NCBI GenBank assembly: GCA_965644295.1
Contig: CBFFRP010000597.1
Location: 1 to 5,593, forward strand
Length of the DNA: 5,593 nt
From: Paraphysomonas bandaiensis
Lineage: Eukaryota; Protista; Chrysophyceae
Reading direction: 5' to 3'
Shown here: piece by piece, positions 1-5,593 of the stretch
How positions within the stretch are numbered: position 1 is the first letter of the stretch
Layout of the letters: every line of letters starts with the position of its first letter
Translations under genes and position numbers: made by a program
The notes under the pieces: generated by a model
Databases searched by the model: none
Told to the model about the DNA's origin: nothing
What the model saw: the letters and a program-made list of their open reading frames with translations, nothing else

Positions 1-16
1 TTCATATAAGTCGGAG

Positions 17-216
17 GAAGGCGATGACCAGGTCAAATGGTCAAAACCAGGTCAAATATGCTATTAGCTAAAAGTTTGTATTTTATGTGTCTAGATTCTT
101 TCTAACATGTTTGTAGCTTGTTTCTACTGCTCAAAACATTATATTTGTTCATTATTTACAAAATAAAATTAGCGATATAAGCATTATAATTACCATATAT
201 ATAACTATTAACTATA
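17..216 (+). repeat. Left terminal inverted repeat (200 bp)
   Basis: gaaggcgatgaccaggtcaaatggtcaaaacc...taactattaactata matches the reverse complement of 5393-5593. By manual alignment there are 8 substitutions (positions 52, 59, 67, 74, 75, 98, 131, 178) and one 1-bp indel near 196. Confidence 0.97.
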
Positions 217-292
217 GAATATATATTATACATAATATAACAATATTCAACAGTTAAGTCATAACATATATAGTTAATAATGCGTTTCAGAA

Positions 293-1372
293 TTACTCAA
301 ACATACGAGCAGTGCAACTAATCCAAGATACAAACATGATTACATAGGCTGATACTGTGGGGGATACTGGAGGGGATGATACCACGTGTTGCTGTGACTG
401 CATACTCAAGATGAAAGCCTCATACGTCTGAACCTGCAGCTCAGCTTCATTCCAGCGTGAAGTACATTTACCTTGATTAAGCAGAGCTTGCGCTTGCACG
501 TATTGCAAAAGAGAGGAAAGGGTAGAAGAGCAGGGCCCAAGTGTCATTTGTTATACCGTTGGCTGCATATGAGGAGTGCATGTGGGTGTCACAGGTGGAT
601 ACCCGCCAGTGAAGTGTTGAGAAGGGGTCCCAACAACTTGAGGTACGTCTACCTTGATTAAGCTGAGCTTGTGCCCACATATACTGCAAAGGAGAGCAGG
701 GTATAGATGAGGGTGGCCCAATTGTCATGTGTTGGTCCGCTGGTTGCACTTGGCCCGAAGGTAGCATAATATTATATATTCCTTCCCAGATTTGAAATTC
801 CTAGTGCGGACCATTGATAAGTGAACGACCTTGTTGGTGCTTTTATTAACCCTAGCCCGAGGACAAAATAGTTGAAGAGTGTAGAAATGGATACCATGAC
901 CTCGAGGTTAAAACAAAAAGTCTCAGTGTGGTACCATGAACTTCTTCCGAACGTAACAGTGGCTCCTCCCTGAGTACTTGATGAAGAAGGAAGATTCAGA
1001 GGTCATATAATCATCCAAGAACTTAAATCCCCAGCTGGTTGTTGGTCTCACTTCCTTCTTTGTGTCCGCTTTCTTGTTCATATTATGGTTGTTGATAACG
1101 ACTCGTCGCCTGTGTGAAAATAAGATCATTTGTTTGATTTCACTCACTGCACGACTCACCATCTTCGGCTGTTTCTGTTTTATCATCATCAAATTCATCA
1201 AGGAATGCTGCAGCTGCATCCATAGCACACTGGGAGCACATCGAGGAGCGTACCCCTCTATCCGATGACAGAAACATTAAGAAGTGCAACAGACAGGACC
1301 CGCCGGCTCTTCCTGAGAGCCACCACTGGAGTACATATCTAGAGTGTTGGAATATGAATCCAAGTCATCCAT
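293..1372 (-). pseudogene. Degenerate second gene of the element, unknown function
   Basis: A minus-strand ATG at 1372 opens MDDLDSYSNTLDMYSSGGSQEEPAGPVCCTS*CFCHRIEGY[fs]MCSQCAMDAAAAFLDEFDDDKTETAEDGESCSE. It is followed by fragments in ORFs 923-1228, 477-767 and 293-547. The duplicated module in the last two ORFs differs by several synonymous third-position changes in this frame, which supports past coding function. Confidence 0.5.
460..752 (-). repeat. Diverged direct duplication (~110 bp, offset 181 bp) encoding a repeated peptide module
   Basis: taccttgattaagc.gagcttg...ggcccaa.tgtcat.tgtt occurs at ~469-552 and ~650-733. The peptides are MTIGPPSSIPCSPLQYMWAQAQLNQGRRTS and MTLGPCSSTLSSLLQYVQAQALLNQGKCTS. 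Confidence 0.85.
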
Positions 1373-1381
1373 TACTTTAAC

Positions 1382-1439
1382 ATGTATGCTGTATATATGT
1401 GTCTATATGTGTATATGTTTGTATGTGTATGTGTGTGAT
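1382..1439. repeat. Degenerate (TA/TG)n simple repeat
   Basis: atgtatgctgtatatatgtgtctatatgtgtatatgtttgtatgtgtatgtgtgtgat, a largely alternating purine-pyrimidine tract. Confidence 0.8.
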
Positions 1440-1581
1440 ATCACTGAGAGGAGTGGATTTGATGACAAAACACCAACTCAACTCAAAAAAATGATGGAAG
1501 AAATTCCGAATTCCGAATACGATCCTCTTTTTTTAGTTCAACACTTCGACTTCACTTCACTTCGACCTCATTCATCATCAT

Positions 1582-1651
1582 CACATGCATACATGTATAT
1601 ACATATATACATATATATTCCACTCATCCATAATATATACATACATACATA
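1582..1651. repeat. Degenerate (CA/TA)n simple repeat
   Basis: cacatgcatacatgtatatacatatatacatatata...atatatacatacatacata, complementary in composition to 1382-1439. Confidence 0.8.
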
Positions 1652-1853
1652 GCCTGAGGCTCTAGTAATATCGCCATCATTTAGATCAAACTCTCTGCAG
1701 TGCATCATAATTTTTCAGTTCGTTGCGCTATCTTCATCGTTTCAATCTGCTTGCTGTGTGAGCTGTGGAGTTGTTCGCAACAGGTATAGAGAATTTCAGT
1801 GCCCTCCACTCTCTGCTTATCGTGATATTGTCACCAACAGAACACAGCAATGG

Positions 1854-2825
1854 TGACTAGTTTGACGGTAGTGTGCTTCGCGTCAGCAGGTTACAGCATT
1901 AGCTGACTAGTTTGACGGTAGTGTGCTTCGCGTCAGCAGGTTACAGCATTAGCTGACTAGTTTGACGGTAGTGTGCTTCGCGTCAGCAGGTTACAGCATC
2001 AGCTGACTAGTTTGACGGTAGTGTGCTTCGCGTCAGCAGGTTACAGCATTAGCTGACTAGTTTGACGGTAGTGTGCTTCGCGTCAGCAGGTTACAGCATT
2101 AGCTGACTAGTTTGACGGTAGTGTACTTCGCGTCAGCAGGTTACAGCATTAGCTGACTAGTTTGACGGTAGTGTGCTTCGCGTCAGCAGGTTACAGCATT
2201 AGCTGACTAGTTTGACGGTAGTGTGCTTCGCGTCAGCAGGTTACAGCATCAGCTGACTAGTTTGACGGTAGTGTGCTTCGCGTCAGCAGGTTACAGCATT
2301 AGCTGACTAGTTTGACGGTAGTGTACTTCGCGTCAGCAGGTTACAGCATTAGCTGACTAGTTTGACGGTAGTGTGCTTCGCGTCAGCAGGTTACAGCATT
2401 AGCTGACTAGTTTGACGGTAGTGTGCTTCGCGTCAGCAGGTTACAGCATTAGCTGACTAGTTTGACGGTAGTGTGCTTCGCGTCAGCAGGTTACAGCATT
2501 AGCTGACTAGTTTGACGGTAGTGTGCTTCGCGTCAGCAGGTTACAGCATCAGCTGACTAGTTTGACGGTAGTGTGCTTCGCGTCAGCAGGTTACAGCATT
2601 AGCTGACTAGTTTGACGGTAGTGTGCTTCGCGTCAGCAGGTTACAGCATTAGCTGACTAGTTTGACGGTAGTGTGCTTCGCGTCAGCAGGTTACAGCATT
2701 AGCTGACTAGTTTGACGGTAGTGTGCTTCGCGTCAGCAGGTTACAGCATCAGCTGACTAGTTTGACGGTAGTGTGCTTCGCGTCAGCAGGTTACAGCATC
2801 AGCTGACTAGTTTGACGGAAGTGTG
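1854..2825. repeat. 50-bp tandem repeat (minisatellite), ~19.4 copies
   Basis: The unit agctgactagtttgacggtagtgtgcttcgcgtcagcaggttacagcatt recurs every 50 bp (tttgacgg at 1861, 1911 ... 2811) with no indels. Variants are T>C at 2000, 2250, 2550, 2750 and 2800, G>A at 2125 and 2325, and T>A at 2819 in the last partial copy. Confidence 0.99.
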
Positions 2826-2905
2826 TATTGTTATTCGTGTATTGTGTATATATAATATATTTTATTGATTAAAATATATATTATATAATCACAATAATAA
2901 CTGAA

Positions 2906-5316
2906 ATGTCTTCTGAAAACAGCCTACCAGGCATGCTGTTGCGTCGTATGTGTCATATATATTATATGTTGTTGCGCTTGTGAGGGGTGTACTGTATTTA
3001 CCATGCGTTGAATGGTACATTCTTGGACGACGCGCAGGACACTATGATCGATTGTATGAAAGAGGTGATAAAAAGAAGAATGCATAGCAGCCGAAGCAGT
3101 ATTTTCTTGATAAGTGCCGATCGTTTGAGTGTCGTGTAGCTGTGTGCGGGAAGTACAAGCTAAATTATTGCTGGTACTGGGACAACGTTTTCTGAGTGCC
3201 TACTGTACCTCGAAGTGGTACTTTGATAATATATATTGTGTCAATGATGAAGGCAGGTTATACTTGTGTAACTATACTTCCTTCAATTCCTTCAACGATC
3301 GTTCCGCGATACCTTAGACCGAAGACTTGTTGAAATTTGCTGATTCGTATGACATGGAAGTGTTTGGAAATGTAAAAATGCTTAATAGTGAGTCTTCACA
3401 CACAAGGAGGGAGGGCGCAGGGCTATCTTCTTGTGCGCTCTTCTCTTATTGCTGTAGCATGGATACTGCACTTTCTCAGTTTAGGGCGATTGTCCTCTTT
3501 GTGGTACCGAGGAATGTCACCTTGACCAATCGACAAAGCACAGCATCTACGATGAATACGTTAATGATATGTGTGCCTTTGGTAGTAGCAAAGATCTGCT
3601 TTCTGAGCGCTCCTTTTTAGACTGTGGAGAAATGTGTACAAGCACGTCAAACATCGAGTTCAAGCAAAGCTGTGGGAATGCCATGTATGTTCCGCTTTAT
3701 CCGAGTTAAGAAGGAAGTATCAGGAAAGGGAGGGTGCAGGGAGGTTACCATGCTGTTTAGCATGCACCGTACTGTATTACTTTCATGGGTGAGCGCCGCA
3801 TCTACTGTACACGACGAGCCCTGGGACTAATGGTCTTATATTTCCGGTATAACTGATTGAGTGTAACAGAATAGATGATGCTTGCTACCATGGTTTGGGA
3901 GGTCTTGACTCGGTTATTGCCCATACCCACGAGGATATAGATGTTCTCTTTGCCCTTATATGGAACTATCTAAAGGACAAACACTGTCTCAGTCCAGATG
4001 AGTTCGAAGGTGTTATCTAATCCGCGTTGCAGTACGAGGGCAAACTTGAAGTGAAGTATATACTTGTGGTCCCGGACTTTTCAGTTTATTTTCGACGGGT
4101 TTGTTGACCCAAAGGTTAAACTTTTCGTAAAGGAGGAATGGGCTCAGCTGCAGTTCATTTTTGAAAGCGTGGAGCCCTCGGAGAGGTATGAACATGGTGT
4201 GAAAGCCACTTGTTGGCGGCCGTATGGAAAAGACGAAGTGGTTGAGATTGTGGATGACCCTGACCAAGATTCGATCACCGAGTTGATCCCTCAGCTTACC
4301 AAGGTCAACATTCAACCTGCAGATGAAAACCCCCCCTTCAATTTTTTATTGCGGTTACCACGAGAGGCTAAAGTATTTAAGCCGGAGCCTTTTGTTGCGA
4401 TGAGTAGGCAACATGCATTAGCTTGCTCATACAAGATGATTCAATCCTACACTGGTAAGAATCCTGCTGTGGTGGATAGTTGGACGCGGTGGAGAGAGAT
4501 AATGTGTTGCCACAGTCTGATGATGCAGATGAACACGTAGCCGAGCATCCCATGTACATTCCCTTCAAGGACCAACTCTTCTCTGGTAATCCAGTTCCAG
4601 AGAGGAGTTCATTGGAAAGAGCAGATCATGCTACAACCCTTGATGGCGTGACTCTTCCGCCAATGAGAGTTTTCGAGAGTACAACAAGCAGTCTGTGTCA
4701 CTCTGGGAAGCCCAAACCTTCTTCCAAAAAACTCGAGACACCTGCTCGTCTTGTAGTCCGTGAGAGGGATGGTTCTGTGCCATCTCAACCAAAGGAGGCC
4801 CGGGCAGGAATTATTGTTACCCAGAAGACTCCAAGAAAAACGCAGACGAAGAAGGGGTATTCATCTGGCAAGAAGAAGGAGTCAGCGACAAAGAAGAAGG
4901 GCTCTTCTTTCAACTCTGACATAATTACTAGTGACGATATTGATGGTTTTGTTGCGGAAGTCGAAGACGAGGAAGAAGAGTCAGAATATGAGGAAGAAGA
5001 AGAGGAGGGAGTTCGAAACTTTGAACTTGGTGCTGTGATTCAGAACATGCATCGCCTGCGCGGGACTATCACAGCTTGACATGACGATGGATCCTATGAT
5101 GTGAAGTACAAAGACGGTAAAACTGATGAGAATGTGTCTTGGAAGTTGCTGTTCCCTCCTCCGGCTCCTCGAAAGAGTACTTCTAGTAAGAAAGGTTCGT
5201 ATGAAATGATGGTTGTTCCGGATGACTACAAGTGGGTGGATACTGGGGCTGTTTCTTCCGCCATTCACTCTGTATCCGGCAAGCGCAAGCGATCGAATGT
5301 AAATTATAAAATGTGA
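2906..5316 (+). pseudogene. DDE/D-type transposase pseudogene (DUF7869/Sola-like) with C-terminal Tudor-like domain
   Basis: Stitching + frames gives colinear motifs: GDCP..EECHLD..KHSIYDEYVND (~3486-3568); SF[fs]RLWRNVYKHVK (~3611-3650); KAV.G.CHVCSALSELRRK (CxxC at 3679-3690); MHR..FMGERRIYCTRRALGL (3782-3829); YISGITD*V*QNR*CLLPWFG (3837-3899); VLTRL[fs]IAHTHEDIDVLFALIWNYL (3902-3972); LVVPDF[fs]QFIFDGFVDPK..WAQLQFIFE (ORF 4064-4540); [fs ~4495] ORF 4480-5079; then in-frame ORF 5101-5316. There are many frameshifts and in-frame stops (e.g. 3858, 3864, 4018, 5077). The 5' boundary is uncertain. Confidence 0.75.
5020..5155 (+). other. Tudor/Agenet-like domain remnant at transposase C-terminus
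   Basis: ORFs 4480-5079 and 5101-5316 share one frame. Reading through TGA 5077-5079 gives FELGAVIQNMHRLRGTITA*HDDGSYDVKYKDGKTDENVSWKLL, which fits the Tudor-like pattern G.I....DG.Y.V.Y.DG....V. Confidence 0.6.
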
Positions 5317-5392
5317 ATTGGCTTGGGACTTTTGTATGATTGTATGGCATTATTTAACGTGTTTTATATATATGAATACTTACGTATATTAT

Positions 5393-5593
5393 TATAGTTA
5401 ATAGTTATATATTATGGTAATTATAATGCTTGTATCGCTAATTTTATTTTGTAAATAATGAACAAATATAATGTTTTGTGCAGTAGAAACAAGCTACAAA
5501 CATGTTAGAAATAATCTAGACACATAAAATACAATTTTTTAGGTAATAGCTTATTTGGCCTGGTTTTGACCATTTGACCTGGTCATCGCCTTC
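5393..5593 (-). repeat. Right terminal inverted repeat (201 bp visible)
   Basis: Reverse complement of 17-216. It runs to the last base of the window, so it probably continues beyond it. Confidence 0.97.

Follow-up and report, generated by a model that had tools for sequence, protein, structure and literature searches.

Zator transposons are similar to bacterial ISAzo13 elements, and both make 3-bp target-site duplications (PMC10045372; also PMC5718144). Sola elements encode DDD transposases and make 4-bp duplications (PMC10741241, citing Bao 2009). In the classification of Majorek et al., Sola falls into clade E together with RNase H1-type domains; clade A contains integrase, mariner and cluster A.28, which is Zator (PMC3985635, PMC5751038). 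Here we analyzed a stretch of 5,593 bp from Paraphysomonas bandaiensis (hereafter the window), which is an entire contig (CBFFRP010000597.1; G000:C597) of a 62.6-Mb, 669-contig assembly. We consider, with a probability of roughly 0.8, that the window is a non-autonomous, mosaic and decayed member of a family of cut-and-paste DNA transposons with two genes and a length of ~5.95 kb. The first-pass annotation, made from the sequence alone, had read it as a two-gene transposon with long terminal inverted repeats (TIRs) and divergent genes around a central minisatellite. This architecture was confirmed: TIRs of ~200 bp enclose a leftward gene (hereafter gene 2), a tandem array with a 50-bp period (1854‒2825) and a rightward transposase gene of the DUF7869 family. 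Both genes are present and divergent as proposed, but both are pseudogenes in the window copy, which also lacks the motif of the second catalytic Asp.

An intact sister copy of 5,951 bp with two open frames was found on another contig of the host genome (G000:C298; L017 2002‒7952). Its transposase open reading frame (ORF) encodes 890 amino acids (L017 4994‒7666), and its gene 2 is a 476-residue open frame, for which the spliced Joint Genome Institute (JGI) model P0090 gives 385 residues. The TIRs of this copy are ~260 bp long, with AAGTCG at the tips and a CCWGGT motif located 20 nt further in. A search of the TIR against the host genome gave homologues at at least 12 places, and these repeats accompany homologous genes at other loci, as in the C298 copy. 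Relative to the intact copy, the window shows mosaic identity: 98‒100% from 4600 to the window end, 71‒80% at 3000‒3600 and 73‒77% at 600‒1200. This distribution suggests that the window is an old subfamily copy that has decayed and has gained its right end by exchange with the younger lineage. The window subfamily is also present on C254 and C661. Neither decay resembling repeat-induced point mutation nor any other biased decay was seen in the window copy (transition/transversion ratio ~1.4‒2.0, no dominant C>T).

The boundaries of the element were defined by comparing copies. Seven independent ends at different loci all begin with AAGTCGG (AAGTCGGAGG), and their flanks diverge before it. Since the ends share this start and the flanks differ upstream of it, the element in the window begins at base 8 and not at position 14, where it had initially been placed. 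An AAGTCG-N14-CCWGGT end layout is common to four families, each represented by a complete element in the host genome, and three of these elements belong to other families with transposases 40‒50% identical. Exact 3-bp duplications flank all four (ATT, ATT, TAT and AAT for C298, C656, C139 and C28, respectively). A complete metagenome element from another organism (L041 2488‒8331) starts with AAGCAAAC and has 29-bp TIRs and TTT flanks. A 3-bp duplication is therefore present in five of five complete elements from five lineages, and none of the five can be read as a 4-bp duplication.

The C298 copy is nested in another repeat family with ~40 genome copies, parts of which flank it (L017 1601‒2001 and 7956‒8360). 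In more than 20 uninterrupted copies of this host repeat, identified as paralogous empty sites by match coordinates, the two flanks lie exactly 6 nt apart. A spacing of 6 nt is what an empty site with a single ATT would give, and these sites are direct evidence that the insertion duplicated 3 bp. The family thus shows all hallmarks of Class II TIR cut-and-paste elements, namely TIRs, a target-site duplication, several copies and empty sites.

The intact C298 transposase matches Pfam DUF7869 (PF25273) with 68.1 bits against a gathering threshold of 26 bits, and all 58 homologues examined match this domain. A first homologue search found 89 proteins, all unnamed and mostly from marine metagenomes; a search with P0080 as the query, combined with a cluster look-up, brought in a small number of named stramenopile sources (Ochromonadaceae, Spumella, MMETSP). 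The invariant alignment columns include Cys104, Cys107, His133, Arg141, Tyr144, Asp164, Gly165 and His279‒Asp285, with Asp244 nearly invariant, and the CxxC..H residues Cys104, Cys107 and His133 are invariant among 61 homologues. In the AlphaFold2 (AF2) model, residues 150‒640 have a predicted local distance difference test (pLDDT) score of 90.7 and form a compact RNase H-like DD(E/D) domain without an insertion domain. Asp164 is located on β1 (strand 158‒166), Asp244 directly follows β4 (strand 236‒243), and Glu282, Asp283 and Asp285 of HEDID open the helix 282‒295, giving a predicted catalytic spacing of DD37E or DD40D. The predicted fold and the placement of its acidic residues are those of an RNase H-like DD(E/D) transposase, the fold on which the earlier interpretation depended. 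In a second alignment, the Glu of HEDID is conserved in at least 90% of the members, and both Asp residues are invariant.

In an exhaustive structure comparison, the closest matches of the model were Metnase (Z 9.4, 173 residues aligned) and Mos1 (Z 8.9), followed by retroviral integrases (Z ~8.8), TnsB and IstA; the agreement of Foldseek with the mariner/integrase matches was weak. The model has a winged helix at residues 19‒99 (RFX5, Z 6.2), and Pfam RFX_DNA_binding is matched by 21 of the 58 transposase members. The tail of the intact copy has marginal Pfam similarity to Agenet (E 0.048) and the PTM/DIR17 Tudor domain (E 0.097). This small Tudor/Agenet-like module lies behind an acidic/basic linker at the end of the transposase (L017 7337‒7663; window 5029‒5151, a weak assignment) and may be a chromatin-targeting tail. 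The intact transposase thus consists, in order, of the winged helix, CxxC..H, the RNase H-like DD(E/D) domain, a β-rich C-terminal domain, the acidic/basic linker and the Tudor-like tail.

Gene 2 of the intact copy contains one 52-nt intron and encodes a protein with a β-rich core, a basic tail and a long C-terminal helix. The AF2 model shows the β-rich core at residues 50‒220 (pLDDT >90), a disordered basic tail and the long helix at residues 318‒345. A Pfam search of gene 2 gave no match, a word-based protein search returned only the protein itself, Atlas features gave nothing, and neither the Atlas fold search nor Foldseek against the PDB found a neighbor. A profile of six gene-2 paralogues nevertheless reached 80 representative clusters among 1.84 billion proteins. 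An N-terminal CxxC..CxxC ribbon is present in the paralogues; in the C298/window family it is degenerate. A sister-family homologue on C139 (L030 3796‒4194) has an in-frame coding repeat of 141 bp × 2.8 within its N-terminal acidic region, and lies beside an intergenic 259-bp × 3 array.

Homologues of gene 2 with 28‒43% identity adjoin DUF7869 genes in divergent orientation at at least 10 diverged loci of the host genome. On metagenome contigs from other organisms, where the transposases are 34‒35% identical, the gene-2 homologue lies just downstream in convergent orientation, and in the L041 element it is located inside the 29-bp TIRs. Since this linkage survives both high divergence and a changed gene order, it argues that gene 2 serves a function of the element. 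A predicted complex between the transposase core and gene 2, computed without alignments, had a score of 0.00, which is evidence neither way.

An internal-deletion derivative on C204 (L018, G000:C204:23460‒27155) lacks the array and the N-terminal 488 residues of the transposase and retains gene 2 100% intact. The left flank of this derivative is identical to that of C298, while its right flank is different, and a 3-bp duplication matching on both sides is absent. The derivative may have arisen by recombination or may represent another haplotype.

The intact copy carries a homologous array of 53 bp × 9.5 between its genes. In the same position, the C139 element of another family has the unrelated 259-bp array, and C656 has no array. 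Arrays are ~98% homogeneous within a copy and only ~84% identical between copies, and they thus turn over fast. We considered the array units as TIR-like binding sites and rejected this idea, because the TTTGAC core and the best local alignment were no better than shuffled sequences (591 and 655 of 2,000 shuffles reached the observed scores). The array could act as a promoter or leader, and we regard a neutral minisatellite as about equally probable.

The transposase ORF of the intact copy is almost fully covered by four polyA marine metatranscriptome runs from one sample, and also by runs from several other studies. Contigs from RNA libraries cover both genes, and the 52-nt intron of gene 2, which reads GT..AG on the minus strand of the gene and CT..AC on the opposite strand, is spliced out in four of four runs. 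In one polyA library, a contig joins L017 4917, 27 nt past the array, to the transposase ATG (4994) across a GT..AG intron, so that the first exon of the transposase starts in or beside the last array units in this library. Short RNA-library contigs also fall inside the array. The window and C661 copies lack the 3′ splice region of this leader intron. At window 1080‒1109, the window-type variant of gene 2 continues RNA-library contigs as a loose end in two runs (X5 polyA and X2); decayed copies of the window subfamily may also be transcribed, unless the libraries contain DNA.

With known Zator and Sola elements compared through their published descriptions, we provisionally place the family with Zator/ISAzo13-type elements, a placement that we hold at slightly better than even odds. 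Zator is favored over Sola because of the 3-bp duplication and because the fold neighbors are ISAzo13, IS630 and mariner. The family shares 3-bp target-site duplications and a TIR-bounded cut-and-paste design with Zator, and a compact mariner/integrase-like RNase H catalytic domain lacking an insertion domain with Zator/ISAzo13. When the fold was compared with the ESM Atlas, two DUF7869 clusters came first, followed by bacterial ISAzo13 (template modeling score 0.41‒0.45 by query and ≤0.73 by target), which is the nearest fold neighbor outside DUF7869, and by IS630; in one of the DUF7869 clusters, 11% of the members also match PF07592, the Pfam family of ISAzo13 (transposase 36). P0080 matches the NCBIfam ISAzo13 model NF033519 (E 2.4e-4), and this match spans the stretch between the second Asp and the Glu. 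A hidden Markov model (HMM) built from seven actinobacterial ISAzo13 transposases gave weak matches in 49 of 172 family members, compared with 6 of 516 shuffled and 20 of 172 reversed sequences. The top-ranked real matches are mostly concentrated at HMM positions ~225‒340, again between the second Asp and the Glu, whereas the control matches are scattered. On the other hand, the family differs from ISAzo13 in having GHTHEDID in place of SKWNKIEH, and from Zator/ISAzo13 in its additional CxxC..H, winged helix, Tudor-like tail, conserved second gene and central tandem array.

Several points weigh against the reading presented here. The alignment of profiles by hhalign to ISAzo13 is non-significant (E 0.078, probability <1%); it pairs the expected motifs (xDGGSxN and LPxG...E/D..F) and sets the Glu of ISAzo13 against the second Asp of HEDID. 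The third catalytic residue could accordingly be read from the alignments as either the Glu or one of the two Asp residues of HEDID. PF07592 matches none of the 58 transposase members in Pfam, and a search with PF07592 against the host genome found nothing. The best fold match of gene 2 is to BAH domains with Z 5.0‒5.6, inside the noise range. The RNA evidence consists of assembled contigs, from which expression levels and transcript ends are not readable, and the libraries can contain DNA. Finally, activity is inferred for the family, which is probably still active.

The alternative that survives best treats the DUF7869 elements, with their compact DD(E/D) transposases, as an unnamed lineage of their own at the superfamily level, which would resemble Zator/ISAzo13 in fold and duplication length only. 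The non-significant hhalign result and the 0 of 58 PF07592 matches fit this idea, as do the invariant GHTHEDID and CxxC..H, which have no ISAzo13 counterpart, and no mention of DUF7869 was found in the literature searched. To our knowledge, described Zator elements carry one gene, and an obligate second gene is not a described Zator feature. We nevertheless judge this separation improbable, at about one chance in a few. Against it stand the ISAzo13 HMM matches that rise above controls mostly in one region, the NF033519 match of one member, the PF07592 cross-matches of an Atlas DUF7869 cluster and the 3-bp duplication shared with Zator/ISAzo13.

Somewhat less probable, and in our view unlikely, is membership in Sola, as a Sola1-like lineage whose DDD transposase happens to produce 3-bp rather than 4-bp duplications. 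The two invariant Asp residues of HEDID, next to a Glu that is less strictly conserved, would allow a DDD triad; an element of ~6 kb with long TIRs lies within the Sola range (2‒9 kb, TIRs variable and sometimes long; PMC10741241), and the transposase is otherwise unannotated. However, the same account defines Sola by 4-bp duplications, whereas all five complete elements and the empty sites indicate 3 bp here. Moreover, Sola belongs to the RNase H1-type clade E, while the best matches of our model are mariner and integrases of clade A, and its fold neighbors are ISAzo13 and IS630. The DUF7869/Sola-related label first given to the window is thus supported for DUF7869 and not for Sola.

Two further superfamilies resemble the family in part. 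PIF/Harbinger elements also combine a transposase with an accessory protein, make 3-bp A/T-rich duplications and work similarly in outline; the transposase here, however, is not DDE_Tnp_4/Plant_tran (0 of 58 in Pfam), the accessory protein is not Myb/SANT-like, with no Myb domain among 50 gene-2 members, and the termini differ. Tc1/mariner-IS630 elements provide the closest solved structures (Metnase and Mos1) and a similarly short spacing of 37‒40 residues from the second Asp to the third acidic residue, but the family here has a 3-bp duplication rather than TA, a much longer protein and two genes, and none of the 58 transposases matches DDE_3, DDE_1 or Transposase_1 in Pfam. Last, it is very unlikely that gene 2 is a captured or neighboring host gene without element function and the array a neutral minisatellite: no known domain or fold was indeed recognized in gene 2, the array unit resembles the TIR no better than shuffles do (591/2000), and arrays differ in period and sequence among lineages and are absent from one, but gene-2 homologues accompany DUF7869 transposases down to ~31‒35% transposase identity, in divergent and convergent orientation, inside TIRs and in other organisms, and the C204 deletion derivative has kept gene 2 whole. 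For the array taken by itself, however, a neutral minisatellite is about as likely as not.

We return to the window as a decayed copy of the two-gene family, and describe its features from left to right. The left flank (1‒7) ends in TAT (5‒7), the presumed copy of the 3-bp target-site duplication. The left TIR (8‒270, plus strand) has the tip AAGTCGGAGG with a CCAGGT motif 20 nt inward, and the right TIR (5385‒5593, minus strand) lacks its final 9 bp because the contig ends. The inverted repeat pairs 17‒197 with 5413‒5593 (181 nt, 96%), with an extension pairing 197‒216 with 5393‒5412 (20 nt, 100%). The gene-2 remnant extends leftward over 343‒1262. Its C-terminal part (343‒755, minus strand) corresponds to residues ~365‒476 of the intact protein and has one stop, and it contains a diverged internal duplication (453‒567 and 634‒748). 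Its N-terminal part (746‒1262, minus strand) covers exon 1 and the intron region and reaches into the start of the core, with 60% identity to the intact protein and two stops. Between them, a deletion of ~625 bp relative to the intact copy (L017 2662‒3285; junction 643‒746) has removed most of the conserved core, as shown by blast collinearity and by gene-2 coverage of only residues 1‒160 and 365‒462.

A TG/TA-rich low-complexity spacer (1385‒1650) lies between gene 2 and the tandem array (1854‒2825; 50 bp × 19.4 copies, 98% matches), which occupies the divergent intergenic region. The transposase pseudogene (2906‒5316, plus strand) has many stops and frameshifts, and its protein is spelled out only when three reading frames are combined. 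The motif series noted in the original reading was recovered on the plus strand: the zinc-type CxxC...H (3491‒3529), ERxxYxxRR (3788‒3820) and AHTHEDID (3919‒3942), which would hold the third catalytic residue (Glu or one of the two Asp). The first catalytic Asp motif reads as SGITD ... CLLPWFG (3843‒3899) and is interrupted by stops. A 280-bp deletion (junction 3898‒3902; L017 5971‒6250, residues ~326‒419) has removed the second catalytic Asp motif, QIDGGSEN. The Tudor/Agenet-like tail (5029‒5151, plus strand) follows before the right TIR. When the HTHEDID piece of the window alone was compared with Pfam DUF7869, it scored only 20.8 bits (E 3e-4) against the cut-off of 26 bits, because the copy is broken.

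Other DUF7869 loci differ in their structure. A more distant family on C213 (L036 2572‒9154), with 31% transposase identity, has 251-bp TIRs that are 99% identical and start with AAGTGAACC; a gene-2 homologue was not detected in this element, and the candidate duplication, CT, is doubtful. The 363-bp inverted repeats on C345 (L024 2120‒2482 and 8403‒8763, starting TACGTTG) enclose a DUF7869 transposase and were rejected as family ends, as they split a gene-2 homologue (pieces 1544‒2152 outside and 2498‒2956 inside) and show no 3-bp duplication; the structure may be a rearrangement or a nested element. Bacterial DUF7869 relatives in metagenome-assembled genomes (MAGs) were likewise set aside, since they look like eukaryotic contamination. 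On one 732,614-bp contig labeled as a Nitrospirales MAG (L051), the DUF7869 gene is in exon-like pieces at 42% GC, and the genome of 16 Mb is far too large; this gene is probably eukaryotic sequence binned into the MAG. Seven further MAG matches to DUF7869 are all on short contigs. One DUF7869 protein (P0228, 694 residues, Logan) also carries Pfam Peptidase_C48, an Ulp1 protease domain. Peptidase_C48 is frequently captured by other transposon superfamilies.

These observations suggest the following mechanism for an intact element. The winged helix would bind the conserved subterminal motif, and the DD(E/D) core would excise the element and insert it at A/T-rich trinucleotides, duplicating 3 bp. 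Gene 2, given its conserved linkage, may be a required or helpful accessory factor, and the array in the shared upstream region may supply the 5′ leader of the transposase. A bolder view sets the DUF7869 elements apart among eukaryotic cut-and-paste transposons, as an unnamed group at the superfamily level that is widespread in marine stramenopiles and depends on a second orphan protein, in which the weakly BAH-like β-barrel core of gene 2 and the Tudor/Agenet-like tail of the transposase read chromatin marks for site choice; we regard this as a long shot.

The window itself is merely an ordinary dead copy, while the family to which it belongs is well delimited. The analysis suggests a function for a Pfam domain of unknown function, with DUF7869 as the catalytic core of a transposase whose element has defined ends and duplicates 3 bp. 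It links hundreds of unnamed hypothetical proteins from marine metagenomes and metatranscriptomes, which gene catalogues otherwise treat as host genes, to mobile elements. The conserved orphan accessory gene, combined with a compact mariner/ISAzo13-like transposase, would represent a second, testable two-protein system of the Harbinger style. The intact and transcribed copy is a candidate active transposon, and may be of use in genetic work as a tool or in following genome dynamics as a marker.

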